Shown here in pieces: positions 9,419-41,930 of a DNA stretch of 64,000 nt. The notes beneath the pieces were generated by a model, which saw nothing but the letters and a program-made list of their open reading frames with translations, did not search any database and was not told the DNA's origin. How positions within the stretch are numbered: the first letter of the stretch is position 1; each line of letters starts with the position of its first letter. A program made the position numbers and the translations under genes. Location: positions 62,001 through 126,000 of the forward strand of contig JAUPSS010000007.1 in NCBI GenBank assembly GCA_040285825.1, written 5' to 3'. Source of the DNA: Eukaryota sp. TZLM1-RC. Taxonomy: Eukaryota; Protista; Metamonada: BaSk clade.

Positions 9419-11557
9419 ATGTCCAGTGTCCTCCAAGCCTTATCTGATGACCTTAACCACCTGCGTGAAGAAGCAGTCACAGTTCTCACTTCAGGCCTTC
9501 GCCTGAGTCACGCTTCCTTCCCCAGAATCGCTCCTTACCCTCTTCCATCACTCTCCTCCTCCACTAACATCATCCATGCCTTAGATCTCAACCCTCCCCT
9601 CTTCATCGGTATCGACCATCTTACCTCCAAACTTCCTTCCCCTTCATCAACTCGACCTCTCTTTGTTCTCCGTGGACCTCCCCGTTCTGGCCGTTCTTCA
9701 CTCCTCACCACTGGCCTTCCTTTTGCTTTAACCTATACTACTAAGCATTTCCCAACTCTTCCTTCCGTCGTACATCTTCCATTCTCTAATATTAAACCTC
9801 GGTACACGTGTTCAGAGTGCTTGGGGGAGTTTTTTAGGCTATTGAAACAATATTCAACCAGGTATGTGGTAATTGATCAAGATAATGATGAAATGAAATT
9901 GAATGAAACGATGATGTCTCCGATTAGGTCAAAATTAGCGATCAAAAATGATGAGGTAATGTCATCATTTGATAGTCCTGCAGTTGCGAAAATTCCATGG
10001 TCTGAGAGATTCAATGTACCTTCCAGTCCATATAAAGCATCAAATTTTGAATTGAGCACTTCTGAGCAAAATTTTAAAAAATTAGATGATACTGATGAGC
10101 TGGGTGATCCTATCATGTCGCTTTCGGAGCAAATTACCAAAATTTTGAAATATTTGTCTCTTTTAAAACAATATACCGGAAATCTATTAATCACAATCGA
10201 TGATTTTGACCTTTTATTCAAAAATATCTCAGACCAAAAAGACAAACAGATAGTTTTACAAGCTTTTGGTTGGATTTTTTCAAATAGTGGTGTAATTTTC
10301 GCCATTTCGATGTTTTCTCATTTAATTATGGATTCCCCAAATGACCTTTCTTTGTTAGTCCAAAATAAAAATGTCAAAATTCATATTATTGACCCTATTC
10401 CTCTTATCTCAGAGCTCAATTACGTGATGGATGACGTTTTTGACTGTCTTGATGACGTGTACAACATCAATCAATCAAAGCATTTGATTAATTTAGTTTG
10501 CTCGTATTTACCATCAAATTTGCAGTATTTATCCATAATTCTTCCATTTTTTCATAAAATTGTCGATTTAAATATAAATGACAAGGACTTTGATTATTTC
10601 TTTAAACAATTTATTAATCAAGAATTTTCTTTTGTTGTTTCTAAAAATGTTCATTTAATAGAAACTCAAGAAACAAAATTAATCGATTTCAATCAAAACT
10701 TACCTATTTTGACCTGGTCTTTTGACTTTCAACGAGTTTTTGATGGCAGTTTATCTTTCAAAAATGATCTATTACGCCTTTGTCAATTATGTTTTGGGAA
10801 AAATCAAATTCAGGTGAACTTAACATTAAACCCGATTGTTGATTCAACTTTAGTTAAAATTGTAAACATTTCAAAGGCAAACTCGTTATATCACCTCAAC
10901 AGATCAATCATTTCTGATCATTTCAACAATAATGACCTTGATTTTGATCTATCTGGACTGGTCAAATTTTTACATTCTTCGATCAATTCAATTAATCCAT
11001 CAAAAATGATTAAAAGAGGTGTTTATGATTATCATTATTCAGATGTTTGTGGACTGTTTCTCAATTCTTGTAATATTAAAAGACCCAATTTAATTGATTA
11101 TAAGTTCATTCACGAAAACTCGAGAAAACTATCAAATTTGATTGATAATCTGATTGGAAATCATTTCAGCTCACTCAATCAATTATTTTCTTTTGTTGAT
11201 GTCTGTGAGTCTGCAATCACGTCAAGTCCTGCTGTTTCTGACCGTTTTGTGATTATTGTGAGCTCTGATTATGATCTTCCTTCTTTAGAAGCAGTCAAAT
11301 CCTTTTTTATTCAAACCTTTAAAATCAAAATTTTCGATCTTTGGCAAAAATCAAACCAAATTTTCGTTTTGATTAATACTTTACAATCCTGCCAAGTGGT
11401 TATTCAGAAGCCTGTGGTTGTTGTGAAATACGAAAAAGTTAAACTTTCGGTAGCTGATTCTAGTACCGCAAAGGGTTGTTGGGAAGTTTATTTTTCAAAA
11501 AGAAAGGGAATTGAAAGCAGCAATTCCACTATTGATTTACTTAGTTCTATGAGCTGA
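9419..11557 (+). CDS. 712-aa protein with degenerate P-loop NTPase-like N-terminal region
   Basis: Long intact ORF. FVLRGPPRSGRSSLL is Walker-A-like with K replaced by R; LLITIDDFD is Walker-B-like. Confidence 0.6.
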   Translation: MSSVLQALSDDLNHLREEAVTVLTSGLRLSHASFPRIAPYPLPSLSSSTNIIHALDLNPPLFIGIDHLTSKLPSPSSTRPLFVLRGPPRSGRSSLLTTGLPFALTYTTKHFPTLPSVVHLPFSNIKPRYTCSECLGEFFRLLKQYSTRYVVIDQDNDEMKLNETMMSPIRSKLAIKNDEVMSSFDSPAVAKIPWSERFNVPSSPYKASNFELSTSEQNFKKLDDTDELGDPIMSLSEQITKILKYLSLLKQYTGNLLITIDDFDLLFKNISDQKDKQIVLQAFGWIFSNSGVIFAISMFSHLIMDSPNDLSLLVQNKNVKIHIIDPIPLISELNYVMDDVFDCLDDVYNINQSKHLINLVCSYLPSNLQYLSIILPFFHKIVDLNINDKDFDYFFKQFINQEFSFVVSKNVHLIETQETKLIDFNQNLPILTWSFDFQRVFDGSLSFKNDLLRLCQLCFGKNQIQVNLTLNPIVDSTLVKIVNISKANSLYHLNRSIISDHFNNNDLDFDLSGLVKFLHSSINSINPSKMIKRGVYDYHYSDVCGLFLNSCNIKRPNLIDYKFIHENSRKLSNLIDNLIGNHFSSLNQLFSFVDVCESAITSSPAVSDRFVIIVSSDYDLPSLEAVKSFFIQTFKIKIFDLWQKSNQIFVLINTLQSCQVVIQKPVVVVKYEKVKLSVADSSTAKGCWEVYFSKRKGIESSNSTIDLLSSMS

Positions 11558-12139: not shown

Positions 12140-13010
12140 TAATTTATTGAACTTGCACATTTAACAAAATAAACTCAGACCTAATGGGACGAAATTCTTT
12201 GAACCAAAATATTCTCTACAAAATCTTGATCTGCTTGCTGTCTAGCTAAAGCTTCTCTTATTCGATTGAAAAACCGTGGCAATCTATTAATAATGGTAAA
12301 TTGAATTCGAAAGCGCCATAAAAATATATCAAATTTTTTCATTGTTTTTTCTTGAACCATTTTTTCGAAATCATTCAAAAAAGTTCCTGCTTCTACTGAT
12401 AGTCTTCCGTTTATAGAAAATGGGAAAGCAATAAAAACAAATGGTCTATTTCTATCAGCATTAACTTCTTCGATATCTCTGTCATATTTTCTATGTTTTT
12501 CTTTGGCCTTAAATTCAAGAGCACTCACAGGATTAAGTTTTCATCTGTGAACCAAGGTGTCATTAGCAACATTAAATGAGACAAAGTCAACGATAGCTTC
12601 AGAGTTATCAATCCAATCACAGTATACATCACCTGTATCATCAGAACCAAAATTATTCAGAGAAAGTGTTTCCTTCAGCAGGGACTCTTTGATACAAGAA
12701 ATTCTTGCAGTTTGTGCGATATTGAAAACAGTGTCTCTAACAGCATGAAGTAATGATAAACGATAAGTTATCAATTTCGAACAGTATCTGAGCATATCGC
12801 AAAGTGAGTTGAGGTGAATTCGAACAATTACATTTTTCTTTTGGTAATAATTGATTAATGGGGATATTCAAATAAAATCTCATTTTTGTTACAAACGCTT
12901 CATTAGTAGCACACAGTCCAAATCTTTGTAATATAATGGTCACAAACAGTGAAGAATCTGATGACTGGTTTTCACAAACACCCTTTTCCAATAACAATGA
13001 GTGAAGATCT
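12140..13010 (-). mobile_element. RLE non-LTR retrotransposon family 1, 5'-truncated and frameshifted copy
   Basis: LLEKGVCEN..HAVRD..GDVY..KHRKY..FPFSINGRLS, matching the other copies; 3' UTR CGTCCCATTAG..AATAAA. Confidence 0.9.
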
Positions 13011-13014
13011 TTTT

Positions 13015-13240
13015 TTGTAATTTATTTATTAAAAACCTATAAATCAACATCTAAATAATCCATCTCTCCCAAAACAAAAACACTAGATGCAACTCTCTCA
13101 TAATGAGATTCAAGAGAGAGCAAAGCATCAGAAACCAAATTCAACATCCCCTTAAAAATAGAAAACACATTTCTACTTTGCCAAAACAATCTGTTGAAGT
13201 TGCTGCCAGTTCTTCTCATCGAATTTAAAGTCAACAAAGT
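13015..13240 (-). mobile_element. 3' end of a second RLE retroelement family (also at 37260-37440)
   Basis: FNRLFWQSRNVFSIFKG resembles the family 1 C-terminus FDIFLWRSRIQFAI; followed by AATAAA and an A-run. Diverged copy at 37260-37440. Confidence 0.6.
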
Positions 13241-15003: not shown

Positions 15004-18000
15004 TTATTCAGTATGTCGAGTTGGATGATCTGTCGTTTCAGATGCAGAATCGAGAGATCCCTCCTCAAAGGACCTTCTAAAATCGAATTGAGAAAAACTT
15101 TCCTCATTGTCACTAGAGGATGTGGTACCAAAGGCAGGAGCATCAGCTTTCTTGTCATTGGTTGAGGGGGCAGTTACTCCAAAACCTGCAAAACTAGAAA
15201 CACTTTCCTCATTGTCAGTAGAGGATGTGGTACCAAAGGCAGGAGCATCAGCTTTCTTGTCATTGGTTGAGGGGGCAGTTACTCCAAAACCTGCAAAACT
15301 AGAAACACTTTCCTTATTGTCAGTAGAGGATGTGGTACCAAAGGCAGGAGCATCAGCTTTCTTGTCATTGGTTGAGGGGGCAGTTACTCCAAAACCTGCA
15401 AAACTAGAAACACTTTCCTCATTGTCAGTAGAGGATGTGGTACCAAAGGCAGGAGCATCAGCTTTCTTGTCATTGGTTGAGGGGGCAGTTACTCCAAAAC
15501 CTGCAAAACTAGAAACACTTTCCTCATTGTCAGTAGAGGATGTGGTACCAAAGGCAGGAGCATCAGCTTTCTTGTCATTGGTTGAGGGGGCAGTTACTCC
15601 AAAACCTGCAAAACTAGAAACACTTTCCTTATTGTCAGTAGAGGATGTGGTACCAAAGGCAGGAGCATCAGCTTTCTTGTCATTGGTTGAGGGGGCAGTT
15701 ACTCCAAAACCTGCAAAACTAGAAACACTTTCCTCATTGTCACTAGAGGATGTGGTACCAAACGCAGGAGCATCAGCTTTCTTGTCATTGGTTGAGGGGG
15801 CAGTTACTCCAAAACCTGCAAAACTAGAAACACTTTCCTTATTGTCACTAGAGGATGTGGTACCAAAGGCAGGAGCATCAGCTTTCTTGTCATTGGTTGA
15901 GGGGGCAGTTACTCCAAGACCTGCAAAACTAGAAACACTTTCCTTATTGTCAGTAGAGGATGTGGTACCAAACGCAGGAGCATGAGCTTTCTTGTCATTG
16001 GTTGAGGGGGTAGTTACTCCAAAACCTGGAAAACTAGAAACACTTTCCTTATTGTCACTAGAGGATGTGGTACCAAAGGCAGGAGCATCAGCTTTCTTGT
16101 CATTGGTTGAGGGGGCAGTTACTCCAAAACCTGCAAAACTAGAAACACTTTCCTTATTGTCACTAGAGGATGTGGTACCAAAGGCAGGAGCATCAGCTTT
16201 CTTGTCATTGGTTGAGGGGGCAGTTACTCCAAAACCTGCAAAACTAGAAACACTTTCCTTATTGTCACTAGAGGATGTGGTACCAAAAGGAGAGACAGAT
16301 AGTTGGAAGGGGTTCGAAAACGAGAAAAATGACTTGGATTCGCTACTGACAAATGGTAAAGCACCAAAAGGGTTAGTTTTGATAGATTCAATTTGATTGG
16401 AATTGTACTTGGACTCTCTACCCAATAACTGTAGACATAGTTGGCCAATAGTATCCACTGAACAATTCTTAACAATAACCTTTTCCAACCATTCTTCCTT
16501 GTTTTTATTGACTGAATAATTAATAAGCTTGTAATCATTGAATCTCACTTCATCAATGCTGAGATGCCTGTACTGGTCCATGGCTGAAATGGATTGAACT
16601 TTCCCCTCAGAGTCCATTGCTGGTGTGAAAGGTGAACAACTGGGAGGAATATCGTTTTCAGACCAAATATTTGTCTTGTTGTTATTAATTAAATTGGACA
16701 GACTTAAATTTAGTAATAAATCAGTTGAAATAGTAAAAATATCTGGAAGTGAATTAAATTCATAATGATCTATAGCTTTACCTAATAACCAAGAATTTGA
16801 ATATTTGATTGAATAATTAATGAGAGAAACGAATTGATCTTCGTCCAAGGTGTTGAATTCTATTTTTGGATGGGCTGATTCAAATTCATTACTAGAAAAA
16901 AGAGGAGAACCAAATGGACTTGAGTCGAGATTGAAAAGAAAAACAAGATCATTGGTGCTAATCAATTTGGAATTATTAACAAAATTAAGAACCAATTTCT
17001 TTTTTAATTCTTCATCAATGAAAAGAGGAAGAAATTCTTTTAATTGTTCAATTGAAGGAAGATATTCTGGGTCAACTTGCACCATAAAAAGAACTAATTG
17101 AGCTCTTTTCGAAATATTCAGCGCGTTAACATCAATTATTTCTTTTCCCAGTATTTCTCTTAAAAGATTTATTTGAAAACAACTCGATTTCGATTCCAAA
17201 TCATTAAGGCAAGTGTTTAGAATTGTTTTGAATTTTTGAAGAGAATCAATAGCTCTAGATATACTTTCTTCTGCTTTAACCTTGACATTTTCATCAAAAT
17301 TGATTGATTCTTCAATAACATTGCAGGAATCGATTTGTTGAATTTTTGACTGTGACTGCCAAATCAAATCACCAATCAAATCACACATAATTGATTGGTT
17401 TCCTTCAATAGTTTCCTTTACCAAATTCAACACTTTACCACCATATTCAACCAAAGGGACACTAACAGTAGTTAAACCAGTTTGAAGTTCATTGGCTTGT
17501 TTTGTAAAGATTTCCCTAGCTTTTGTGAATGGAATGAGACAATCTTGATGGAGAGAATGACTATTGTTTTCCGATCGATCGGAATTACAAGAATCGCAAA
17601 GAGCGACCTTGCATTTGGTACAGAAATAACTTAAAGTTTTTCCTTTGTGGTGAGGACATCTCGGAAGGGAAAGTTCTGATCGAAGAGAAATGGGAACAGG
17701 ATGGTGGGATTGGAACACTTTCATTTGGTGAACTTCAGAGGAACAGTCTTGGCAAAAAGAGACATCACAATCCTTGCAGAAGAGGGTAGCATCAGCATCT
17801 TCGCAATTGGGACAAAGTTCGGGTTCGGGTTCGAGTTGGGTTGTGGTAGAGGTCTGATTCATGGCATCGATGGCCTGCTGAATAACGACAGTGATGTGAA
17901 CAGCATCAGACGTAAGGGGTTCCCGACAGACCGGGCATGTAGAGTCGGAGTTCTTGCAGATTAGAAGACATTTATCACTGCAGAAATTATGTCCGCAAGG

Positions 18001-18060
18001 AAGAGTTGTTGGTGATTCGATGGTTTCTAGGCATTGGGGACATTTTTTGAAGTCAGTCAT
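15004..18060 (-). CDS. TRIM-like RING-Bbox1-Bbox2-coiled-coil protein with GLEBS-like motif and FG-repeat tail (1018 aa)
   Basis: RING CPQC..LPCGHNFC..C..CPVC; B-box CPNC..CKDC..CQDC..H..H; B-box2 CPHH..CTKC..CDSC..H..H; helical region; QSISAMDQYRHLSIDEVRFNDY; 35-aa repeats containing AFG and GFG. Confidence 0.9.
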   Translation of the reverse strand: MTDFKKCPQCLETIESPTTLPCGHNFCSDKCLLICKNSDSTCPVCREPLTSDAVHITVVIQQAIDAMNQTSTTTQLEPEPELCPNCEDADATLFCKDCDVSFCQDCSSEVHQMKVFQSHHPVPISLRSELSLPRCPHHKGKTLSYFCTKCKVALCDSCNSDRSENNSHSLHQDCLIPFTKAREIFTKQANELQTGLTTVSVPLVEYGGKVLNLVKETIEGNQSIMCDLIGDLIWQSQSKIQQIDSCNVIEESINFDENVKVKAEESISRAIDSLQKFKTILNTCLNDLESKSSCFQINLLREILGKEIIDVNALNISKRAQLVLFMVQVDPEYLPSIEQLKEFLPLFIDEELKKKLVLNFVNNSKLISTNDLVFLFNLDSSPFGSPLFSSNEFESAHPKIEFNTLDEDQFVSLINYSIKYSNSWLLGKAIDHYEFNSLPDIFTISTDLLLNLSLSNLINNNKTNIWSENDIPPSCSPFTPAMDSEGKVQSISAMDQYRHLSIDEVRFNDYKLINYSVNKNKEEWLEKVIVKNCSVDTIGQLCLQLLGRESKYNSNQIESIKTNPFGALPFVSSESKSFFSFSNPFQLSVSPFGTTSSSDNKESVSSFAGFGVTAPSTNDKKADAPAFGTTSSSDNKESVSSFAGFGVTAPSTNDKKADAPAFGTTSSSDNKESVSSFPGFGVTTPSTNDKKAHAPAFGTTSSTDNKESVSSFAGLGVTAPSTNDKKADAPAFGTTSSSDNKESVSSFAGFGVTAPSTNDKKADAPAFGTTSSSDNEESVSSFAGFGVTAPSTNDKKADAPAFGTTSSTDNKESVSSFAGFGVTAPSTNDKKADAPAFGTTSSTDNEESVSSFAGFGVTAPSTNDKKADAPAFGTTSSTDNEESVSSFAGFGVTAPSTNDKKADAPAFGTTSSTDNKESVSSFAGFGVTAPSTNDKKADAPAFGTTSSTDNEESVSSFAGFGVTAPSTNDKKADAPAFGTTSSSDNEESFSQFDFRRSFEEGSLDSASETTDHPTRHTE
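15097..16287 (-). repeat. Coding tandem repeat, 105-bp unit, about 11.3 copies
   Basis: TGTGGTACCA recurs every 105 nt from 15121 to 16276. Unit encodes AFGTTSS(S/T)DN(K/E)ESVSSFAGFGVTAPSTNDKKADAP. Confidence 0.97.
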
Positions 18061-19560: not shown

Positions 19561-20571
19561 TCAATCAAAATCTAATACGCCAGTGAACCTTGACCCTATT
19601 CCACCAAGATCAACCAACGTACTACTCTCTAATTGAGCTGCCTCTAAGTTTTGTTTAGCAGTAATAGACACCACTCTTTCGTCAAAGGAAGGACCAACAG
19701 ATTTGCATACATCCAAGGCCAAACCATTCTCAAAGACTAATTTAACCTTCCCAGACTTGAATACTTTCAATTTTCCACAATAACCGGGAGTAACATTGGA
19801 CAAGGAAGAATCAAACAAATGGCCACAGTTACTTGGAAAAGGTTCAAAAGGTTTCGGTGGCCTCTTTCCACTACTTTTAGCCTCAGCTACCTCTCTATCA
19901 GACGCCACCTTCTTCCTTCTTGACTGTACGGGTGTGGTAGGTTGTCCTTTTTTAGCTGCAAATGGGTCCTTGCTTGGTAGGAAAGGTAATGAAGAAGGTA
20001 GTTGTAACATGAATAATCCTGAAATTAATTAAATAAATATAGACAAACCATTGGTGTTCTTCCAATCCTCGGCAGCTTTCTCAAACAACACCCCACAACG
20101 AGGAGCAAGGTGATACACTGGTTTTTCTTGAGGATCAGAAGGGAGAGGTTCAGGGGGAGGAAGAAAAGGAAGTTCTGCTGGCTGGTAGTTTTCTTCAAAT
20201 ACTAATTCCCTTTCGGCATAGTTGTTTAGTAATTCAGGTTTAAGTTCATCTACTGGACTGAATGCGAACGGGACGGAAGCATCGTTGGCTTTGGCAGAGA
20301 AGAAGGTCGCTCCCATTTGCATTTGGGGTTTCTGACGCTTCACCTTAGGGGCGGTGGGTTTAACGTCTTGCTTCCTTTCAAGCTTGCGCTCTATGGATTT
20401 GAGAAGTCCAGGTATAGCTCCAGACACGGAAGGTTCACCTGAGGAGCGAGGACGTGGAGGGGCAAAGGGTACAAATGACTTTTTAGGAGCCCCACCAAGA
20501 GTGGTGTTGGAATTGCGTTGAAGGGAGAGTGAAGGAAGACGGCGTGGTGGAGGTGGTTTGGAAGGATCCAT
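19561..20571 (-). CDS. POLR3D: RNA polymerase III subunit RPC4 (C53), one intron at 20019-20048
   Basis: A 30-nt GTTTGT..TTAATTTCAG intron joins two ORFs into GLFMLQLP..GKLKVFKSGKVKLVF..LDV..LVDLGGI, the Rpc4 C-terminal domain pattern. Confidence 0.85.
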
Positions 20572-20952
20572 CGTTGAGTTGGGGTTGTGGACTAGGGAAG
20601 TATGTGTAAGTTGGAGTTGAGAGGTTGGCAAATTGGGTTTTAAAAACTTTTAATGTTTGTTATTGTCAACAACTATTACTCACCCTACAGATGACCAATT
20701 TGAAATGTGATATGTTACGGAGGTATGATAACATAAGCAAAAATCATTAACTGAGAGCTTGTGTCAAGGACAGCACTATTATAAGTTTTGGCTCAAATTG
20801 CATTGCTCTTTCACTACTAATATCGCATAGCATTCAATTAACAAACTCAGGTGCAAGTTATTATTATTTGCAAGTCAATGGAAGAATTATTGATAGTTCG
20901 TGAGAGGATTATCAGCTGAATTCAAAATATTTTTTGCCTCAAAGCTCAACTC

Positions 20953-23424: not shown

Positions 23425-24024
23425 TTTCTGCTTCTACTGATAGTCTTCCGTTTATAGAAAATGGGAAACTGATACACACAAAAGGCCCATTTCTATCACC
23501 AATAGCTTTTTCGACATCTTTGTCATATTTTCTATGTTGTTCGCTTTAAATTGATGAACACTTACAGGATTAAGTTTGACTGGATCACTCTACCATAAAT
23601 ACACAGTGGTTATCTATTTGTCTCAAGAAATTTCATCCAGTGCTTCACGGTAAAATACAATTTTTTGTTGTTCTCAATCCAGGTACGATTTCTTTGAATA
23701 ACTTTCAAAAACTGGTTCAAGAAGTTTTTATTGCTTTCCCATTTTCGATAATTGGAAGATTTTCAGATGAAGCAGAAACTTTTTTGAATGACTTCCAAAA
23801 AATGGTTCAAGAAAGAACAATGAAAAGATTTGATATTATTTTATGGCGTTCTCGGATTCAATTTGCCATTATTAATAGATTACCTCGGTTTTTCAATCGA
23901 ATAAGAGAACGTTTAGCTAGACAGCAAGCAGATCAAGATTTAGTAGAGGAAATCTTGGTTCAATGATAGCCGTCCCATTAGTTGTGAATTAATTTACCTA
24001 AGTGTGCATATTCAGTAAATATAA
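23425..24024. mobile_element. Two family 1 retroelement fragments in opposite orientation (23425-23580 minus; 23695-24024 plus)
   Basis: Plus fragment encodes FIAFPFSIIGRFSDEAETFLNDFQKMVQE..RQQADQD and keeps the 3' UTR. The minus fragment matches 12385-12540. Confidence 0.85.
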
Positions 24025-24838
24025 AGAGCATGAAACAAAAATGACGAACAACTCAACTTGAGTCAGTAAAAATAGTTGTTATAAAGTAGCTTATAATGTT
24101 CCTGCTTTTAGGCACTAATTTATCAAAATTATTAACTCAATCCATCATTTCCCCCTTTATCTTAAACTTTAATTTTAGGAAATTTCTTGTCAATTGTTCA
24201 AGTTTTAACTATTAGAATGTATACTGATTTATAAGAAAATAAATGCTAGAAGGGGGTTTCCTTTATGTGTAGTTCATACACCAATACACCCAACCTTTAT
24301 TTTGAAAGCAATTTTACAACTCATTCTAGTGGTTAAATAATTCATTGAATTGTTGAATACAATCCATCAGTGCATTTCATTTTGAAAAACGGTATTGAAG
24401 TATCATTATGGTTGCCTACCAATTAAATTTACGTTTATTGCTGCCGTATTTTATTTGATAATGTATAATGGTTAACATTGTTTATTTCAACAATTGATTC
24501 TTCAAAGAACATCAAAAATCCAATGCGTAGAAATCAGTATTGGTTGAACAACAGAAAAGTAAACAAAAACGAAATAAAAAGGGGAAACTGATGAGAGAAG
24601 CTAGATAGCAAAGGGATTATCTGAAGTATTAAGTTTTGCTCAAGTAGTTTCAGAAGGAGAATGAAATAGAATATAATAGTTTATAACTTGGAAGAGTTGG
24701 TTGAAAAATTTCATCGTTAATGTAAAGATCAATCGACTTTATTCTATACAAGAATACAACAAAACGATTAAAAAGCACATCAAACAGATTATTTTTGCTT
24801 AAAAACAAAAAAAGCGAATACAAGAACAAGAACAAACA

Positions 24839-26950
24839 CTATTTGGTAAAGGGACTTGTTACTGAATTACTACTAGAAGCTGTTGCAAAAGAAGATTGGT
24901 TGGACCCCATCATTCTTGCAAATGCCTGGTTGTTATTAACTGAACCAAATGGAGATCCAAAAGAAGGTGAATCTGTGGTGTTTTGATTTCCAACTAAACT
25001 CATGTTACCAAAAGAACTACTGAAATTAGGTTGCGGTCGTGTTGAGGTAATGCCACCGGAATTGGTAGCAAAAAGACCACTGGGTTTGGTGGATTTAAGT
25101 TTGGTGGTACTGTGATGCTCACTTGAAGTGGTATTGGTTGAGGGGGCAGTGACACCAAAACTTGTAAAGCTAGAAACACTTTCCTTATTGTCAATAGTGG
25201 ATGTGGAACCAAAAGCAAAAGGAGAACTTGAAGAAGCAGACGGTTCTTTTGAGTTGACGAATCTTAATGACGAAAACTGTGGTAGTAAATTATTTTCATC
25301 ATCAACAAAATTTGAATCTTTAGTTGATGTGTTTTGAGAAATTTTGATAAACCTCCTTGACCCTGCCGATCGATCGGAAATGTGAGGGAAAGATGAAAAT
25401 GACTTGGATTCGCTACTGACAAATGGTAAAGCACCAAAAGGGTTAGTTTTGATAGATTCAATTTGATTGAAATTGTACTTGGACTCTCTACCCAATAACT
25501 GTTGACATAGTTGGCCAATAGTATCCACTGAACAATTCTTAACAATAACCTTTTCTACCCATTCTTCCTTGTTTTTATTGAGTGATTTAGAAAGATTTAA
25601 ATTTAATAATAAATCAGTTGGAATAGTAAAAACATCCGGAAGTGAATTAAATTCATAATGATCTATAGCTTCACCTAATAACCAAGAATTTGAATATTTG
25701 ATTGAATAATTAATGAGAGAAACGAATTGATTTTCGTCCAAGGTGTTGAATTCTATTTTTGAAAGGGCTAATTCAAATTCATTACTAGGAAGAAGAGGAG
25801 AACCGAATGGGTTTGAGTCGAGATTTGAAATAACACCAAGATCATTGGTGCTAATCAATTTGGAATTATTAACAAAATTAAGAACCAATTTCTTTTTTAA
25901 TTCTTTATCAACAAAAAGAAACAGAAATTCTTTTGATTGTTCAATTGAAGGAAGATACTCTGGATCAACTTGCACCATAAAAAGAACTAATTGAGCTCTT
26001 TTCGAAATATTCAGCGCGTTAACATCAATTATTTCTTTTCCCAGTATTTCTCTCAAAAGATTTATTTGAAAACAACTCGATTTCGATTCTAAATCATTAA
26101 GGCAAGTGTTTAAAATTGTTTTGAATTTTTGAAGAGAATCAATAGCTCTAGATATACTTTCTTCTGCTTTAACCTTGACATTTTCATCAAAATTGATTGA
26201 TTCTTCAATAACATTGCAAGAATCGATTTGTTGAATTTTTGACTGTGACTGCCAAATCAAATCACCAATCAAATCATAAATGATTGATTGGTTTTCTTCA
26301 ATAGTTTCCTTTACCAAATTCAACACTTTGCCACCATATTCAACCAAAGGGATGCTAGCAGTAGTTAAACCAGTTTGAAGTTCATTGGCTTGTTTTGTAA
26401 AGAATTCCCTTGCTTTTGTGAATGGAATGAGAGAATTTTGATGGAGAGAATGACTGTTATTTTCCGATCGATCGGAATTACAAGAATCACAAAAAGCGAC
26501 CTTGCATTTGGTACAGAAATAACTTAAAGTTTTTCCTTTGTGGTGAGGACATCTCGGAAGGGAAAGTTCTGATCGAAGAGAAATGGGAACAGGATGGTGG
26601 GATTGGAACACTTTCATTTGGTGAACTTCAGAGGAACAATCTTGGCAAAAAGAGACATCACAATCCTTGCAGAAGAGGGTAGCATCAGCATCTTCGCAAT
26701 TGGGACAAAGTTCGGGTTCGGGTTCGAGCTGAGTTGTGGTAGAGGTCTGATTCATGGCATCGATGGCTTGCTGCATAAGATAGTTGACACGGAATAGACC
26801 CGGGGGAAGGGGTTCTCGACAGATTGGGCATGTGGAGTTGGATTTCTGCCAGACCAGAAGACATTTATCCCTACAGAAACTGTGTCCGCAGGGAAGAGTC
26901 GTTGGTGTTTCCATGGTTTCTAGGCATTGCGCACATTCGAGATGAGACAT
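24839..26950 (-). CDS. TRIM-like RBCC protein with short Ser/Thr/Asn-rich FG-containing tail (703 aa)
   Basis: Core nearly identical to 15004-18060 but lacks the GLEBS-like segment. Has one copy of the repeat unit plus SSFG and PSFGSPFG. Confidence 0.9.
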   Translation of the reverse strand: MSHLECAQCLETMETPTTLPCGHSFCRDKCLLVWQKSNSTCPICREPLPPGLFRVNYLMQQAIDAMNQTSTTTQLEPEPELCPNCEDADATLFCKDCDVSFCQDCSSEVHQMKVFQSHHPVPISLRSELSLPRCPHHKGKTLSYFCTKCKVAFCDSCNSDRSENNSHSLHQNSLIPFTKAREFFTKQANELQTGLTTASIPLVEYGGKVLNLVKETIEENQSIIYDLIGDLIWQSQSKIQQIDSCNVIEESINFDENVKVKAEESISRAIDSLQKFKTILNTCLNDLESKSSCFQINLLREILGKEIIDVNALNISKRAQLVLFMVQVDPEYLPSIEQSKEFLFLFVDKELKKKLVLNFVNNSKLISTNDLGVISNLDSNPFGSPLLPSNEFELALSKIEFNTLDENQFVSLINYSIKYSNSWLLGEAIDHYEFNSLPDVFTIPTDLLLNLNLSKSLNKNKEEWVEKVIVKNCSVDTIGQLCQQLLGRESKYNFNQIESIKTNPFGALPFVSSESKSFSSFPHISDRSAGSRRFIKISQNTSTKDSNFVDDENNLLPQFSSLRFVNSKEPSASSSSPFAFGSTSTIDNKESVSSFTSFGVTAPSTNTTSSEHHSTTKLKSTKPSGLFATNSGGITSTRPQPNFSSSFGNMSLVGNQNTTDSPSFGSPFGSVNNNQAFARMMGSNQSSFATASSSNSVTSPFTK

Positions 26951-26974
26951 GGGGTTGATTAAATTTCAGGAGAA

Positions 26975-27290
26975 AATTTCGCTTGTTTTGATTGATCTTA
27001 AAGACAGTTGCTCAAGTTGCCTAATCTCCCAAATTCCCAACATTTATGGCCTTCTACTTAATGATCACCAATGGACCACTGCAATGAGAATGAGATGTTT
27101 TCTATGGCCTTGTTCTTTACCAAATGATTTTATTTGTCGCTGCAAGAGTGTTGGTTCGCTTTCCCATATTTCAAACTGTAAGTATTTCATAACTTATCGC
27201 TTAATTGTTCATGACTCAGTTCATGATCAATTATATGCCATGTGCAAAAGTTTCGATATAGAGGCATTTATTGAGCCATTAGTACGTATG
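26975..27290 (+). mobile_element. Family 2 RLE retroelement fragment (mirror copy 48335-48650, minus strand)
   Basis: PNIYGLLLND..MRMR..CRC..SHISNCKYFITYR..HDSVHD, homologous to family 1 PRRFGLCATN..CIC..HALNCSKLITYR..HDAVRD. Confidence 0.8.
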
Positions 27291-28337
27291 GATCTCATAA
27301 TGTTAGTGCTTCATTCTTTTTGCTTATACAGATAATTCAATTGACTAATTATAGAATAATGATAGACATACTCGACTGGGCGTATAGATTGAGTTTTCCA
27401 AAGCTAAGATGTCCAATTATAAGTTTGGAAATTGGTCAAAAACTGAGTTGTAGATAACATACATTTTTAGTATTAAATGGTATGAAATTACAGTCTCTCT
27501 ACAGTTCTCTCTTCTAATCATCGACAAAGTGTGGGTTCCTTTGGATAATAGATTTGAGCTTTGAGGAGATTTAATGAAATATGATCTTCACAGTATTTTC
27601 AAAGTATTAACAACCCGCAGGAAACAACATTTTACATATTCTGGAAAAGATATAGTAGCACAATTGTCTTTCACCAAAAGCATAAATTGTACATTTAATA
27701 TATTTTTTGTCTTCAAAAATACAAAAGGGGTTCACCCAAAAATATGGTCAACAATTTTTCAAGTTCAATTTTTGAAAAATTGAAAAATAGGTTAGGATTG
27801 TTCATCATTTTACCGAATCTTCAACAAAATATAAGGACAAGTATGACAATATTTTGAAAAGATTAAATGTTTAGGTTGAAATGAAACTGTCATGAATTAA
27901 CAACTAACAAACTACATCATCTCTCCTACATATCCACGGAATACATTAACCAAAAACATATCAGATATATGAAAACATTTAATACCATGGTAATCTGAAT
28001 GATAATCGACATCGTTATAAAAAGGATTAAGTTATTTAATTCTAGTATTCATCATTTTATGACCATTGCAATTTGTAGCTAATTGTAATTGTGATTGACC
28101 AGTATTTTCTTTTAATTCTCAATTAGTCTAGTGTGATAGAAAAATCACTAACAACTGTTCACAAAAGCTTTTCAATAGAAATAATTGTTCTATAATATGT
28201 TTGCAATTGCAGAAACCAGAACGAGTGGTAATGAAAGGCCTCAATATCTGTGTAGTAGATAGTTTTTCTGATTCATTCACACGAAAATTGATCATCCTTG
28301 TTGTTTTGGGCTTTCAATTCAACCTGTGATCCTCGAA

Positions 28338-29066
28338 ATGAAATACTTGTTCGGCAAAGCTAAACCTGAAACAGAACCATGTGCACATTGTGAAGCAGGT
28401 CCCATATCTCTCTTTTGCTCTGACTGTAAGTTTTCTTTCTGTGAAGCCTGTGCCTCTCGGAGCCACTTCAGCATGCTTTTGAAATCCCACAACCTCGTCT
28501 CCGTTTCACAGAAAAGCTCTGTCTCTTCCTCTCGTTTTTCTCAACCAGTTTCAAGAAAGAGATTGAGCAGAGAAAGTTACCGAAATTTGTACTCAGTTAA
28601 TGTCTCGCCACATCAACCAATCCAAAAACCCAAAACCTTCAATACTCATAGAAGTGGTTCTGGCATGATTTTTTCTGATGATAATAGAAGGACGATGAAT
28701 ATTTGCTGTAGTGAATTTGAGCAGTGTAACTTTGCGGTCATTAATTTCAACCCTGAGGAATTCCAAATTGCCCTCCAAAGAACTCATGTAGATGACCATT
28801 TTCTCAGTGAATTCATTGGGTTTTGGGAATCACACAGGATTAAGATTGCCAACCATCGTGGTGGTATTTGTTATGGTACATCTGATCGGCAAGAATTCCT
28901 TCTTCCTCCAATGAAAACAGGAGACATTTTGTATGTCAATATAGAAGGTGGAAGAGCATGTTTCAAACTCAATGACTACAGCGATACCAAAACAATTCCT
29001 TCTGGTACTGTATTTGGTATATGGACTCGTAAGGGTAGTGAATACTCAATTGTAGATTATAAGTAA
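28338..29066 (+). CDS. B-box + SPRY-like domain protein, no RING (242 aa from ATG)
   Basis: B-box CAHC..CSDC..CEAC..H..H. FNTHRSGSGMIFSDDNRRT and MKTGDILYVNIEGGRACFKLN resemble a PRY/SPRY-type beta-sandwich; the SPRY call is tentative. Confidence 0.7.
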   Translation: MKYLFGKAKPETEPCAHCEAGPISLFCSDCKFSFCEACASRSHFSMLLKSHNLVSVSQKSSVSSSRFSQPVSRKRLSRESYRNLYSVNVSPHQPIQKPKTFNTHRSGSGMIFSDDNRRTMNICCSEFEQCNFAVINFNPEEFQIALQRTHVDDHFLSEFIGFWESHRIKIANHRGGICYGTSDRQEFLLPPMKTGDILYVNIEGGRACFKLNDYSDTKTIPSGTVFGIWTRKGSEYSIVDYK

Positions 29067-30124
29067 TCAATTTTTTTAGAATCAGGAGAATTAAATAAAT
29101 ATTTATAGAATTTATTCAATTTTTTCAAGGAGACTTTGTATCTGCAAATTTATTATAAATTAATTCAAATTATTTCCAATATTGTGTCGAGGAGATGTTT
29201 TCTTTGAAAGACAAATTGTGCTCACAATTCACTGTTTTTCCGCCGAAGTACAGATTGGTCACAAACCATGTAACAATGTTTTAAATGGCAATTTACTTTT
29301 TCTTTACGTTTTTGATAGAATTGAACTTCAGTTCAAGTAACTTTCAGCTGATGCAATTGGCAACCCAGATTCTATTTTAGGCAAAATTGATGAAATTTCC
29401 AATATATTATTTGAAAGATTGATTATAATTTCTGAAACAGTTGAACAATTCTACGAATTGGTTGTACAGAAACAGAGCAACTTTACCATGATAAGAGGCT
29501 GTTTCACTTTGATAGTCTATTTAAATCCACAAATGCTTTCATGACGAAACTTGAAGGTTAATGAGTTTAGTGCTAAAGTTTGAAAATTCAGTTGATTGGG
29601 TGTGGACTCTAACCATGCTTATGCTAGTCGACAATATGGTGGTTTGAATTGACCTTAAACTGATATTTGTCACTATTGTGCCACGAAAGTTTGGGCTTTG
29701 TGCTAATAATGGTGCTGTCTAAATGTAATCAAATATCTCTGCATTTACGACATGATCGTATTTGCTGGTATAAAAGCAATTCGACAAAATACTTAGATAC
29801 TACCTCAATAAAAACCATTGACAATTCCACAATCAAAATAATTTGCTGGTTTTAATCTTGGACAAAACAATTAGCAAGGGAATATTCACGATCAAAAAAG
29901 CAACCTATTCACTCTTGTATTGTCGTCTTTGGAATTGTTGAGAATACCTTGCTGGAACATTTTCATATTTATAACATGTGAAATTGTAGCCAAAACACAC
30001 CAATGGAGCCTTGCAATGAATGATCAGCTGAAGTTAAAGACTTTTCAAATACATTTCAAAAAGGGACAAGAGAGTTTTGTGGTAAGAATATTTTATGTTT
30101 TTTCGGAATTTCTGTGCAATTTAT

Positions 30125-32570
30125 AAATAAATTTATATTTATTGAATTTGTACACTTGATTAAATTAAATCATAACTAATGGGACGACTATCATTAAACC
30201 AAGATTTCCTCTACAAAATCTTGATTTGCTTGCTGTCTAGCTAAAGCTTCTCTAATTCGATTGAAAAACCGCGGTAATCTATTAATAATGGCAAATTGAA
30301 TCCGTGAATGCCATAAAAAAATATCAAATCTTTTCATTGTTTTTTCTTTCACCATTTTTTGGAAGTCATCCAAAAAAGGTTCTGCTTCAACTGATAATCT
30401 TCCATTTATCGAAAATGGGAAAGCAATAAAAACCAGCTGTGTATTTCTATCGACATTTGCATCTTCAATTTCTTTATCATATTTTCTATGTTTTTCTTTT
30501 GCTTTAAAATCCAGAGCAGCCACAGGATTAAGTTTTCTTCTGTGAACCAAAGTATCGTTTGCAACATAACATGAGACAAAGTCAACAATAGCTTCAGAAT
30601 TATCAATCCAATCACAGTATACATCACCTCTATCTTCAGAACCAAAATTATTCAGAGAAAGTGTTTCCTTCAGCAGGGGCTCTTTGATACACGATATCCT
30701 TGCAGTTTGTGCCATATTGAAAACAGTGTCTCTAACAGCATCATGTAATGAAGAACGATAAGTTATCAATTTAGAGCAATTTAGAGTATGGCGCAAAGTA
30801 AGTTGAGGTGAATTCGAACAAATACATTTTTACTTTTGATAATAATTGGTTAATGGGGATGTTCAAATATAATCTCATTTTTGTTACAAATGCTTCATTA
30901 GTGGCACACAATCCAAATCTTCGTGGTACAATGGTTACAAAAAGTGAAGAATCTGACGCCTTGTTTTCACAAACACCCTTTTCCAATAACAATGAGTGAA
31001 GATCTTGATTTAAAACAGCCGAGCTCCAAATATTATTATAAAGATCTTTTTCATACATTCCAGTCAATCTTTTCTGTAATGTTCGAAGAGTGTACTTCAA
31101 ATTTAAAACAGTTTTTTCTGGAATATTGCCATTGAATGATTGGGGAAAACATCGACCCCATTTTTCTACATCAATTCTTGAAATTTCTTCATTTAATGCA
31201 AAAACAGTGGAACTTTGCGTTGTCATCAATAAATCTTCCCAATCTGCAAATCTTTCGGAAAACTCAAAGATTGCATTTCTGCATCCACCAACAAAAGCAC
31301 ACGAGGTAAGAATAGAAGCCTTCGTCCACCCTAAACCACCATAATGTGGACTAACGTAAGCATGATCTGGAATTTGAAACATTTTACATCCCAGTAATTG
31401 AGACAGAACTTTTGCACGTAACTCATTAAATTTTTGAGCCAAAGGTCTAGTGACGAGAGGATTTGTAGATCGAAATATATGATTAAAATTGGAACAAAAC
31501 ACAGTCTTATAATGGTAAATTTGATGTGTTTTTTTATATCTAAATTCATCATTCGGTCAATTTTGTCAGAAATTGAGTTCAACTTTTCAAACAATTTTTT
31601 GGTAATTTCATCATTATTTCCTAAAAATGAACCCAAATGACGAATAGCATCAATTGAATATAATTTGGCTTGAATTTCAATATCATCAATTATTGTGGAA
31701 ACTGGAGAATTCGATAACAAAACACATTTAAGTAAATTAAGTCGGAGACCAATTTTGGTAAATAATTCTTTAAATCATACAGTTGCTTTTTTCACAATAT
31801 TTAAATCACCAATAAGCACAACATCATCCATATATGCAATCATTTTTAGTGAAGGAAACATCTCTTGAATTTGCAGTAGAATAGGATGAATGGCCAAACA
31901 AAACAAAAGAGGTCCTAACGGATCTCCTTGCTTTATGCCACTTGATGAACTCAAAATGTTGTTACCAAAATGTAAATTAGAATATGTGCAATATGTTGAT
32001 TGAAAATATGGTATTAATTCCGGCATATATTGCAATAGAGCACCATGGATACTGCGACGACTTAGTGAATTGAAAGCATTACTAAAATCCAATGACATGC
32101 AAACATTGGATTCATTTTGACGAAATAAGTCATCAGCAGCAAAAATCGCTGAAGAGACTCCATCTGTAGTATTTATACCATATTGAAAGGGTAATAAAAT
32201 CTTTTTAGCTTTTTCATTGAACCTGCTTAAGCAACACGCAGAAAAAATATTGTGTAAGCTCTCAGAGACTGCAATAGGACGAACATCCATTTTTGAATTT
32301 TTGACAAGTGCAGTCAAACGAGAACTTCTTAATTCTTCTGGGTATTTGCGTTGACCAGATAATATTTGGTTGAAAAATTTGGTCAATAAACCAAGGCAAT
32401 CTTCTGAAGAAATAATCGCGGCTTTTACATGATCAATAGTAATACCAGAAAGTCCGGCAGACTTACCACGAGGTCTCTTTTTGATAACCGAAAAAACTTC
32501 TGATGGCATCAATGGATAATTTTCCCAATGGTGCAATTTATACAATTTAGCTTTGGTATCAGCACAAAAG
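30125..32570 (-). mobile_element. Longest family 1 CRE-like non-LTR retrotransposon copy (RT + Zn knuckle + RLE), 5'-truncated and frameshifted
   Basis: RT motifs VRPIAV, FQYG, LDFSNAFN, GIKQGDPLGPLLF, YMDD, HLGS, GGLG; then HDAVRD, RGD..IVD, KHRKY. No APE domain seen. Confidence 0.92.
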
Positions 32571-35567: not shown

Positions 35568-35704
35568 CAAGGTACACCACTAGCTAATGACAGAGGGACA
35601 CAACAGAGGAGTTGTCTTCAAAGTATGACGTATGGAAGATATACAGTATATGAGGATTATTAATATGTTAAAATGTTGGTCTCTTTTGTCTTTGAAAAAA
35701 TCAA

Positions 35705-36610
35705 TATAATAATATATGCAGCTCGGCTGTTTTAAATCAAGATCTTCACTCATTGTTATTGGAAAAGGGTGTTTGTGAAAACAAGTCGTCAGATTCTTCA
35801 CTTCTTGTAACTATTGTACCACGAAGATTTGGATTGTGTGCCACTAATGAAGCATTTGTAACAAAAATGAGATTATATTTGAACATCCCCATTAATCAAT
35901 TATTATCAAAAGAAAAATGTATTTGTTCGAATTCACCTCAACTCACTTTGCGCCACGCTCTGAATTGCTCTAAATTGATAACTTATCGTTCTTCATTACA
36001 TGATGCTGTTAGAGACACTGTTTTCAATATAGCACAAACTGCAAGGATATCGTGTATCAAAGAGCCCCTGCTGAAGGAAACACTTTCTCTGAATAATTTT
36101 GGTTCTGATGATACAGGTGATGTATACTGTGATTGGATTGATAATTCTGAAGCTATTGCTGACTTTGTCTCATGTAATGTTGCAAATGATACTTTGGTTC
36201 ACAGAAGAAAACTTAATCCTGTGGCTGCTCTGGATTTTAAAGCAAAAGAGAAACATAGAAAATATGATGAAGATATTGAAGAGGCTAATGTCGATAGAAA
36301 TACACAGCTGGTTTTTATTGCTTTCCCATTTTCGATAAATGGAAGATTATCAGTAGAAGCAGGAACTTTTTTGAATGATTTCCAAAAAATGGTTCAAGAA
36401 AAAACAATGAAAAGATTTGATATTTTTTTATGGCGTTCACGGATTCAATTTGCCTTTATTAATAGATTACCTCGGTTTTTCAATCGAATTAGAGAAGCTT
36501 TAGCTAGACAGCAAGCAGATCAAGATTTTATAGAGGATATCTTGGTTCAATGATAGTCATCCCATTAGTTATGAGTTAATTTAATTAAGTGTGCAAATTC
36601 AATAAATACA
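35705..36610 (+). mobile_element. Family 1 retroelement, 5'-truncated, with open RLE domain
   Basis: 266-aa ORF 35753-36553 followed by the conserved 3' UTR. Confidence 0.92.
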
Positions 36611-36699
36611 TTTTATGTTAAAAAAATCAAACTTATTTCTGCTAAGTTTCTTCTTGCACCACGCTGCAGGTTTCCACACATAATTGAGGAATATTCAGG

Positions 36700-39054: not shown

Positions 39055-39126
39055 CACGTGCGATGGGACTCGAACCCACAATCCTTTGCTTAGGAAACAA
39101 AAGCCTTTCCATTAGGCCACGCACGT
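39055..39126 (-). tRNA. tRNA-Arg(CCT)
   Basis: 72 nt. Acceptor stem ACGTGCG/CGCACGT, D arm GCC..GGC, anticodon loop TT-CCT-AA, T loop GGTTCGAGTCC. Confidence 0.93.
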
Positions 39127-40621: not shown

Positions 40622-41545
40622 TTACACCATCCCAGGCAAAGTTTCCATCTTGATCTGTCCATTTATCGTAGATGGTGTAAGCATAGGAGAAAGCCTTGGA
40701 GAATGTGGTTCAACTCGACCTGGAGTGAAAGCACTGAGGTCGGCCGACGTATTCCAACCATCCTCCACATCCTCGTCAACCGTTTCTCCCGGTAAACTGC
40801 CCACTTTTCTAATGGGGATATCGATGTTCAACCGTGGAGGTTTTGGATTGGGTTTGGGTTTACGAACAAGACATATAGGAATACACCATTGTTTTTTGTC
40901 ATACAAATGTCTGTTTTTTAGGTAATTATAAGTTGTGGTGTGAAGAGAAATTAATTTTAAATGAAATAAGAATAAAGGAAAAAGCAATATTAAAATCGCA
41001 ATAATGAGAATAAAGTTGAGGAAAAGTAAAAGAATGATGAAAATACCCAAAGTTAAACTATCAAAAAACAAATCAAATAAAACAAGAAAAATAAAGATGG
41101 CTAAAATTGCACACAAAGACAATGTTGACGATAATAACACCATAAAGGCGGAATAATTTCTAGTTTTGGCGGAGTCTGAGCCCTTGGATACACAGTTATT
41201 GATCCATATGCAGTGATGATCAAATACATCAACACATTTATTGCACACTCTGCAATGCTTGGAAGTTTTCAAAACATTCCTTTTACAAATGTTGCAAAAG
41301 AGTGTGTTGCCAAGGGAGAATGTCTCCGTCGTATCGGCGGGATTAACCAGCGATGTCTTGACGAAGGATGTGATGGTAATGGTTATATTAATGAGAAGAA
41401 TGAATGCAGAAGTCCATGAAAGTACAGGGGAAAGGATTGGAAGAACCAAGAAGAAGTAAGACGTGATGAGAAAGAAGAAGACTACAAAAGCGCCAAGCTG
41501 AGCAGAACCAAATGGACGATGCAATCCATGACGTCTTGATGGCAT
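40622..41545 (-). CDS. DHHC palmitoyltransferase (zDHHC1/11-like)
   Basis: RRHG..P..Q N-terminus; FCNICKRNVLKTSKHCRVCNKCVDVFDHHCIWINNCV; TM helices; TTYNY. Confidence 0.93.
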   Translation of the reverse strand: MPSRRHGLHRPFGSAQLGAFVVFFFLITSYFFLVLPILSPVLSWTSAFILLINITITITSFVKTSLVNPADTTETFSLGNTLFCNICKRNVLKTSKHCRVCNKCVDVFDHHCIWINNCVSKGSDSAKTRNYSAFMVLLSSTLSLCAILAIFIFLVLFDLFFDSLTLGIFIILLLFLNFILIIAILILLFPLFLFHLKLISLHTTTYNYLKNRHLYDKKQWCIPICLVRKPKPNPKPPRLNIDIPIRKVGSLPGETVDEDVEDGWNTSADLSAFTPGRVEPHSPRLSPMLTPSTINGQIKMETLPGMV

Positions 41546-41930
41546 GGGGTTGGTGGCATCAAACAAGAGGGTAGGGGCTCTCTATCAATTGATTTGTTGG
41601 GAAAAATATAAATGGGTTCTGTTGAATTGGATCATCTTGAATAGAAGGGTTTTACAGCAAATGTTGAAACATGTTTCATCAAGTTAAACCAAACCCAATC
41701 ATAAACATTGCTACTGTCATACCATATATTTTCGTTTACAACAGAGATCAAGCCACAATAAAATTTGTCTGAGAACCAAGGGCACAATATGTTAAACAAT
41801 GAGTCAAATAGGCTGATTAATCACAAACAAATCTTTCCCAGTTAATGAAGAGTTGGGTAGTTTCAATTCATTTTCTTTAGAGAAATGATTGGGAAATCAA
41901 TATACTCTTCAACAACCAAACACCACTCCA

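Follow-up and report, generated by a model that had tools for sequence, protein, structure and literature searches.

A Nup98-type GLEBS motif and an FG-rich tail in a TRIM-like RBCC protein of the metamonad Skoliomonas litria

How does a protein built like a TRIM ubiquitin ligase come to carry parts that resemble those of a nucleoporin, and what might it do with them? The question is raised by a gene located in a 64,000-nt stretch of DNA (hereafter the window; positions 62,001 to 126,000 of contig JAUPSS010000007.1, NCBI assembly GCA_040285825.1) from Skoliomonas litria TZLM1-RC, a free-living anaerobic metamonad of soda lakes (PMC11316075, PMC11603281). The exact 1018-residue protein is a called gene on this contig and is encoded by a single uninterrupted open reading frame (ORF) that makes an intron unnecessary (positions of all features are given in Table 1). 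An original prediction, made from the DNA letters alone, had seen in this one ORF a RING finger, two B-boxes and a coiled coil (together, RBCC), a GLEBS-like motif and an array of phenylalanine-glycine (FG) repeats, and knew of no described protein of this architecture. The combination is real, as judged from the ORF itself, Pfam, PDB matches, AlphaFold2, phmmer and Tandem Repeats Finder; the order is RING, B-box 1, B-box 2, helical hairpin, a family-specific helical domain that holds the GLEBS motif in an insert, and the FG-rich tail. Sequence comparison thus identifies the product as a lineage-specific, TRIM-like RBCC protein of S. litria. The claim of novelty stands as well, since no other protein or paper with RBCC, GLEBS and FG repeats was found: as far as the searches reached, we could not find this domain combination described or encoded elsewhere. 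They covered the literature, 1.84 billion representative proteins (phmmer with residues 462-720 as query, E-value cut-off 0.001) and a metagenome scan, any relative whose identity to P0001 or P0002 exceeds 50% being concealed within the cluster of that protein; the metagenome scan also returned no relatives of residues 401-560.

The GLEBS-like motif is indeed a Nup98-type GLEBS. In the phmmer search, exactly three proteins from outside the family align to it, and all three are GLEBS proteins, as defined by Pfam: P0020 (E 1.4e-11), a NUP98A-like protein of Salvia splendens with seven GLEBS copies; P0022 (E 6e-9), a metagenomic protein with three; and P0024 (KAL0226409.1; E 1.9e-5), a bona fide Nup98 with FG repeats, GLEBS and S59 autopeptidase. 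The two remaining non-family matches, P0021 and P0025, fall on the repeat region and reflect composition. Because its gene lies in the assembly that also contains the window, on contig JAUPSS010000001.1, P0024 is the host's own Nup98; a search with it as query returns Nup98s only. Its residues 162-196 match the GLEBS core of the RBCC protein at 24 of 35 positions (69% identity, 31 similar, E 6e-14). In a comparison of the motif with 153 proteins, most of them Nup98s, the host Nup98 reaches 58 bits, and none of the others, more than 140 Nup98s included, exceeds 37. All six columns that are invariant in the aligned GLEBS sample (I, S, E, R, D, Y) are kept and the Nup98-type signature Q-x-I-[ST]-A-M-x-x-Y is present, while the acidic pair preceding the Arg is D-E here versus E-E in Nup98. 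By these sequence criteria, the GLEBS is of Nup98 origin and closest to the Nup98 of the host itself. The homology is confined to this element, tblastn of the host Nup98 on the window giving no match besides the GLEBS core.

P0022 and its cluster, found on metagenome contigs from JGI/ENA, represent an environmental eukaryotic protein in which an N-terminal domain without assignment is combined with FG repeats and three GLEBS; as its three copies and the seven of the S. splendens protein show, GLEBS motifs have been duplicated and grafted elsewhere too.

The copy in the RBCC gene is not a recent one. At the DNA level, identity to the host Nup98 falls to 64% over the GLEBS core and nearly every synonymous site differs, with a non-synonymous proportion (pN) of 0.18. 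Since synonymous sites are saturated while pN is this low, the motif is an old copy whose peptide selection has maintained in both genes, and a recent copy from Nup98 is rejected on the same grounds. A foreign origin was also considered from the GC content at third codon positions. With 0.51, the core ranks in the top 5% of 35-codon windows, which average 0.31, but the deviation is too weak to support such an origin.

The original prediction had placed the GLEBS simply after the coiled coil. The motif is there, but it lies inside the helical domain of the family, carried by a 177-nt in-frame insert of 59 residues that is missing from every other family member, outgroup paralogues included. On the family tree, the insert is a derived state. 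Its borders are not GT..AG. At the junctions the sequence is rich in A/T and contains short direct repeats, which fits a microhomology-mediated insertion and proves nothing; border inspection revealed no evident poly(A) or retroposition signature. An intron was rejected as an explanation, the borders being of the wrong type and the insert being in frame and encoding a significant GLEBS. A word-based search with the insert alone matched only the query, so that the exhaustive phmmer search was needed to find its relatives. An AlphaFold2 model of residues 1-600, computed from 19 family sequences (mean predicted local distance difference test score, pLDDT, 59), places the insert between confidently modelled helices and predicts it to be disordered (pLDDT <50 at residues 458-514); a disordered loop would suit a motif that folds on its partner. 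The helical domain around it is conserved across all paralogues and in the BTB proteins P0017, P0018 and P0023, had no significant structural match in a PDB fold search, and ends in LLGRE, the family motif at which C-terminal modules are exchanged.

The N-terminal part is that of a TRIM-like protein. The RING matches Pfam zf-C3HC4 with 22.9 bits (cut-off 21), and a residue can be assigned to each of its eight zinc-ligand positions; ligands 5/6 have the C-x3-C spacing seen throughout the family. Two stretches match zf-B_box with 41.6 bits (cut-off 24.1). By sequence, the RING/B-box end finds TRIM21, TRIM3, TRIM56 and TRIM25 in the PDB, TRIM21 being the best match of the RING. The predicted helical hairpin that follows sits where TRIMs carry their coiled coil, at moderate AlphaFold2 confidence. 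A fold search with the model of the RBCC and middle domains returned nothing significant from the PDB; its low-probability matches were generic helical repeats and TRIM RINGs.

The third element, the FG-rich tail, has a different history from the GLEBS. About 11 repeats with two FG motifs each and S/T-rich, charged spacers had been predicted, and Tandem Repeats Finder reports just such an array (repeat family D1): period 105, 11.4 copies, 97% matches, score 2268. Each 35-residue unit carries one AFG and one GFG, with DNKE and NDKKAD in the S/T-rich spacers; both FG are kept in 10 of 11 units, the remaining one reading GLG, which gives 22 FG in residues 592-990. The whole tail contains 23 FG, the median distance between them being 18 residues; S+T make up 32% of it and charged residues 20%, and a motif count over residues 563-1018 found neither GLFG nor FxFG. 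Unit-to-unit differences consist of S/T and K/E variants that form an ordered set. Two long ORFs on the opposite strand of the array (15107-15985 and 15992-16396, both +) are by-products of the repeats, not genes.

As to whether the GLEBS and tail derive from Nup98 or Nsp1, the answer is split: the GLEBS does come from Nup98, but the FG tail lacks homology to either protein. No homologue of the tail was found beyond three genes of the window, either among the representative proteins or by comparison with the host Nup98, whose FG regions are uncharged (0-1% charged residues) and Q/N-rich with FG spaced 9 residues apart. Each of the two other genes, paralogues described below, contains the unit of the array just once. 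Because the precursor unit exists in the paralogues, no nucleoporin homologue can be detected and the composition is unlike that of Nup98, the array is attributed to local amplification, and capture from Nup98 or Nsp1 is rejected. Nor is the tail a degraded SPRY or DUF7408 coding region, of which tblastn found no trace in or downstream of the gene. FG enrichment is not an effect of amplification alone, since the single-copy tail of the 703-residue paralogue has 6 FG where shuffled sequences predict 1.16 (P about 1e-4). The earlier assignment of the tail to the Nsp1/Nup62 type is thus not borne out: a tail made by tandem amplification, with neither FxFG nor GLFG, net negative and without homology, does not belong there.

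These three elements are set in a family whose relatives were found solely in skoliomonads. In S. litria, besides the gene itself and its two window paralogues, the family comprises eleven RBCC proteins (P0003-P0013) and three with BTB; Skoliomonas sp. GEM-RC1 contributes three proteins. Five members (P0004, P0006, P0010, P0011 and P0012) start at MEQPTT, so that the first RING Cys pair is missing; these starts are probably mis-called start codons rather than the mark of RING-less proteins. The C-terminal module differs between groups. P0003-P0005 end in a domain of about 135 residues with a SPRY fold (AlphaFold pLDDT 72; top Foldseek matches SPRY, probability 1.0), for which a PDB sequence search with the domain profile returned nothing and fold comparison was needed. 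P0006-P0014 and P0016 carry a DUF7408-type module (recognized by Pfam on P0006 and by sequence alignment on the others; P0015 ends within it), and the three window genes have the FG-rich tail. A maximum-likelihood tree computed over the RBCC and middle region (17 rows, BTB rows omitted, rooted on the GEM-RC1 sequences) groups the FG and SPRY clades as sisters (SH-aLRT 99), the DUF7408 clade being in turn the sister of this pair. Sequence alignment and fold prediction thus show a family that swaps its C-terminal module after the helical domain, for SPRY, DUF7408 or the FG tail. The BTB proteins, encoded on other contigs, have BTB followed by the helical-middle-domain and SPRY cassette, so that RING-type and BTB (cullin-3-type) scaffolds seem to share one recognition cassette. 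The TRIM logic invoked in the original prediction, in which the C-terminus selects the target, accordingly finds its counterpart within this family.

Identity between the gene and its window paralogues is mosaic. The RING is the most diverged part (67-83% nucleotide identity, synonymous divergence, dS, 0.62), the flanks of the insert are 89-100% identical (dS 0.11 across the middle domain and 0.03 immediately past the insert) and 180-nt stretches of the B-box region are 100% identical to the 703-residue paralogue. We read this pattern as gene conversion among clustered paralogues from which RING, insert and array escaped, and on this view the flanks do not date the insertion. The alternative is a recent and precise loss of the insert in the ancestor of the paralogues.

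Several known systems share one or two of these features. The order RING, B-box 1, B-box 2, coiled coil is that of TRIM/RBCC E3 ligases, in particular of the class IV TRIM-SPRY proteins TRIM5, TRIM21 and TRIM25, and S. litria has paralogues that end in a SPRY fold. In contrast to these, the S. litria protein is not from an animal, has an extra all-helical domain after the coiled coil and ends in an FG tail; it is TRIM-like by architecture. Outside animals, only a TRIM37-like subfamily has been reported (Marin 2012, PMC3503706).

With FG nucleoporins in general, which have disordered domains with many FG at a spacing of roughly 10-20 residues, the tail shares both properties. A Nup98-type GLEBS next to FG repeats recalls Nup98/Nup116. 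However, the S. litria protein has no S59 domain (PF04096, present in P0024) and no GLFG, which places it outside the Nup98 family; moreover, its spacers are charged and acidic and its GLEBS lies in a helical domain instead of the FG region. FG about 18 residues apart with S/T-rich spacers and charged residues are likewise reminiscent of Nsp1/Nup62, but in the absence of both FxFG and Nsp1_C (Pfam) the protein is not Nsp1/Nup62-like either.

The functionally closest systems known to us are TRIMCyp, BuGZ and RanBP2, together with Highwire/MYCBP2 and TRIM34. TRIMCyp proteins are the TRIM5-cyclophilin A fusions of primates. They, too, show a TRIM-type scaffold gaining binding specificity from a captured piece of another host gene; the S. 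litria gene differs in having taken about 40 codons from the middle of its donor into an internal loop, and in the age of the copy. Coupling of a ligase to Rae1 or to FG repeats also has precedents: RanBP2/Nup358 is an FG nucleoporin with SUMO E3 activity and Highwire/RPM-1/MYCBP2 is a RING E3 that binds Rae1. In addition, human TRIM34 co-precipitates with RAE1 and nucleoporins, a contact that may be indirect (PMC13189347). None of these combines RBCC, GLEBS and FG repeats, and TRIM34 has neither of the last two.

What, then, could such a protein do? The reading that we favor, while granting it no better than an even chance, is that of a ligase-type scaffold that would mimic Nup98 to engage Rae1 and FG-binding transport factors, its target-selecting end having been rebuilt from nuclear-transport parts. 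The coiled coil would dimerize the protein, as in TRIMs, and the GLEBS would recruit the WD40 mRNA-export factor Rae1/Gle2, as in Nup98. The multivalent FG tail could bind transport factors (karyopherins, NTF2-like or Mex67/NXF1-like proteins) or partition into FG phases. The RING/B-box end would in this way be brought beside the mRNA-export and transport machinery and might ubiquitinate either that machinery or its bound cargo. Neither Pfam nor the fold search found a known pore-anchoring domain; since the tail is also acidic with charged spacers, a soluble or transiently pore-associated Nup98 mimic is expected over a stable pore subunit.

A number of observations weigh against this scheme. 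The Pfam Nup98_GLEBS profile scores the motif below its cut-off of 27 (17.8-19.7 bits, E 0.0036 and 0.00091), the host Nup98 barely reaching it with 27.2, and a PDB sequence search puts four Nup98 GLEBS entries on top at E values of only about 0.4-0.6. In the RING, for which AlphaFold confidence is low, the family alignment shows that the Ile of C-x-I-C is replaced by Gln in the FG clade, and that this gene has Cys where the family has Trp ahead of the last Cys pair; the Arg that follows this pair is retained. The Ile of the C-x-I-C loop contacts the E2 in many RINGs. With two canonical E2-contact positions atypical, the ubiquitin-ligase activity of the protein is putative. As for the tail, it carries a net charge of -25. 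A basic character is usual for canonical FG domains and an acidic one for transport receptors, which may make for weak receptor binding by this net acidic tail. Its array, with units 97-99% identical, is too young to show selection. Finally, the combination of RBCC, GLEBS and FG repeats is known from one gene in one genome.

Some of the same facts would also be expected of an ordinary TRIM-like paralogue with an incidental tail, in which a young, neutral, low-complexity array would be unrelated to nuclear transport and the GLEBS alone, if anything, would be functional. We consider this rather unlikely, yet serious. The near-identity of the units is in its favor, and the differences between them are almost all non-synonymous. 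The tail has no nucleoporin homologue, lacks FxFG and GLFG, and is acidic, unlike the FG regions of the host Nup98. Even its copy number could be off, since the genome is a Nanopore assembly with Illumina polishing (PMC11316075). Against it, FG is enriched already in the non-amplified tail of the paralogue, the spacing of 17-18 residues is nucleoporin-like, one unit alone has lost an FG, and FG repeats with GLEBS in one protein are the hallmark of Nup98/Nup116.

The original prediction had itself proposed two roles, a pore-resident quality-control ligase and an integrated decoy. In the latter, a composite Rae1-GLEBS surface and the FG motifs would bait viral, retroelement or parasite factors that attack the Rae1-Nup98 hub or dock on FG, ubiquitination would follow, and the protein would be a sensor of the innate-immunity type. 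Such a role, argued by analogy with TRIMCyp and with the integrated decoys of plant nucleotide-binding leucine-rich-repeat (NLR) proteins, appears improbable, although it is not without attractions. The family looks like a fast-evolving recognition family, with at least 14 same-genome paralogues in clusters, exchangeable C-termini and a mosaic identity suggesting gene conversion, and its surroundings are rich in segmental duplications and retroelements. The captured motif, moreover, corresponds to the surface that is targeted in animals by the M protein of vesicular stomatitis virus and by ORF6 of SARS-CoV-2 (literature cited in PMC13189347). Purifying selection on the GLEBS would fit a Rae1-binding decoy, but would fit a housekeeping role equally, and there is no virus or parasite in the data. 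To our knowledge, none is known from skoliomonads.

GLEBS motifs bind either Rae1 or Bub3, which opens the way to a mitotic role like that of BuGZ. BuGZ/ZNF207 likewise joins a zinc-binding N-terminus to a long low-complexity region and a GLEBS in a protein that is not a nucleoporin. By analogy, the S. litria GLEBS would bind Bub3 and not Rae1, the tail would drive condensation at the spindle or kinetochore, and the RING would regulate Bub3 levels; Ubr5 is reported to control BuGZ/Bub3 turnover (PMC4602037). We regard this as quite improbable. BuGZ has C2H2 fingers and a Bub3-type GLEBS, has no RING or B-box and is not an E3, whereas the S. litria motif (Q-x-I-S-A-M-x-x-Y...S-I-D-E-V-R-F-N-D-Y) is of the Nup98 type, has the host Nup98 GLEBS as its nearest relative by far, and is matched outside the family by Nup98-type GLEBS exclusively. 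Lastly, a non-functional chimera or assembly artefact, conceivable for a single genome and a repetitive region with retroelement-rich surroundings, is very hard to reconcile with a 3-kb ORF left uninterrupted by its 1.2 kb of repeats, distinct variants arranged in an ordered pattern among the units, a GLEBS protein sequence conserved despite saturated synonymous change, and an insert that is in frame and in a loop.

The gene is a natural experiment in domain capture: a ligase-type scaffold has acquired the Rae1-binding motif from the Nup98 of its own cell, retained it under selection and gained an FG tail in addition. Were the proposed binding true, nucleoporin mimicry would address a ligase to the mRNA-export and nuclear-transport machinery and offer a handle on the turnover of Rae1, transport receptors or their cargo. 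Were the protein instead a decoy, a solution like that of TRIMCyp or of NLRs with integrated decoys would have been invented independently outside animals and plants. In either case, the existence in a metamonad of a sizeable TRIM-like family that comes in SPRY, DUF7408 and FG forms, with a sister architecture built on BTB, bears on when recognition of the TRIM-SPRY type arose, or how often it was reinvented.

Table 1. Features of the RBCC-GLEBS-FG gene, its window paralogues and other genes, in window positions.
Feature	Residues	Positions	Strand	Basis or remark
Whole gene	1-1018	15004-18060	-	1018 codons + stop
RING finger	5-50	17911-18048	-	Pfam zf-C3HC4; TRIM21 RING alignment; family alignment
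B-box 1	80-120	17701-17823	-	Pfam zf-B_box and ANCHR-like_BBOX
B-box 2, C-x2-H type	133-175	17536-17664	-	second zf-B_box stretch; TRIM3 alignment over residues 120-175
Coiled-coil hairpin	178-304	17149-17529	-	AlphaFold2 helices 178-244 and 257-304, pLDDT about 60-70
Family-specific all-helical middle domain, first part	305-456	16695-17148	-	AlphaFold2 pLDDT 77-90 over residues 310-450
In-frame insert	457-515	16516-16694	-	protein and DNA alignments
Nup98-type GLEBS core	478-512	16525-16629	-	alignment to host Nup98; tblastn; phmmer
Middle domain, last helices	516-562	16375-16515	-	pLDDT 86-90 at residues 520-550; ends in LLGRE
Whole FG-rich disordered tail	563-1018 (456 residues)	15007-16374	-	composition count
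105-bp x 11.4 tandem array	592-990	15091-16287	-	Tandem Repeats Finder
RBCC paralogue	703 residues	24839-26950	-	same RBCC and middle domain, no GLEBS insert, single FG unit in degenerate FG tail
RBCC paralogue, ORF	735 residues	48582-50789	+	about 99% identical to 24839-26950; other arm of inverted segmental duplication
RNA polymerase III subunit Rpc4		19561-20631	-	apparently two ORF pieces
tRNA-Arg(CCT)		39055-39126	-	
DHHC palmitoyltransferase		40622-41566	-	
Protein kinase		41889-43256	+	
Calreticulin-family fragment		61260-62078	+	

The neighborhood of the gene has itself been rearranged. The two window paralogues lie, with their neighbors, in the arms of a 6.1-kb inverted segmental duplication (24173-30321 and 45302-51457, 99% identity). 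Each arm also holds a 246-residue ORF (28326-29066, +, and 46558-47298, -) with a B-box (Pfam, 24.2 bits) followed by a SPRY-like domain 55% identical to that of P0003, which is either a short B-box-SPRY gene or the remnant of an RBCC-SPRY paralogue. A reverse-transcriptase repeat family is present in at least six copies (about 12142-13016, 23724-24025, 30120-32545, 35693-36624, 43612-45487 and 58237-60005), with RVT_1 ORFs at 31775-32545 (-) and 43667-44572 (+); several copies adjoin RBCC genes, and these repeats may have mediated rearrangements. Beside the TRIM-like cluster, a called gene of 712 residues (9419-11557, +) has a sub-threshold nSTAND1 match (E 0.0054), a P-loop-like GPPRSGRSS and no PDB sequence match, and may encode a STAND-type NTPase.

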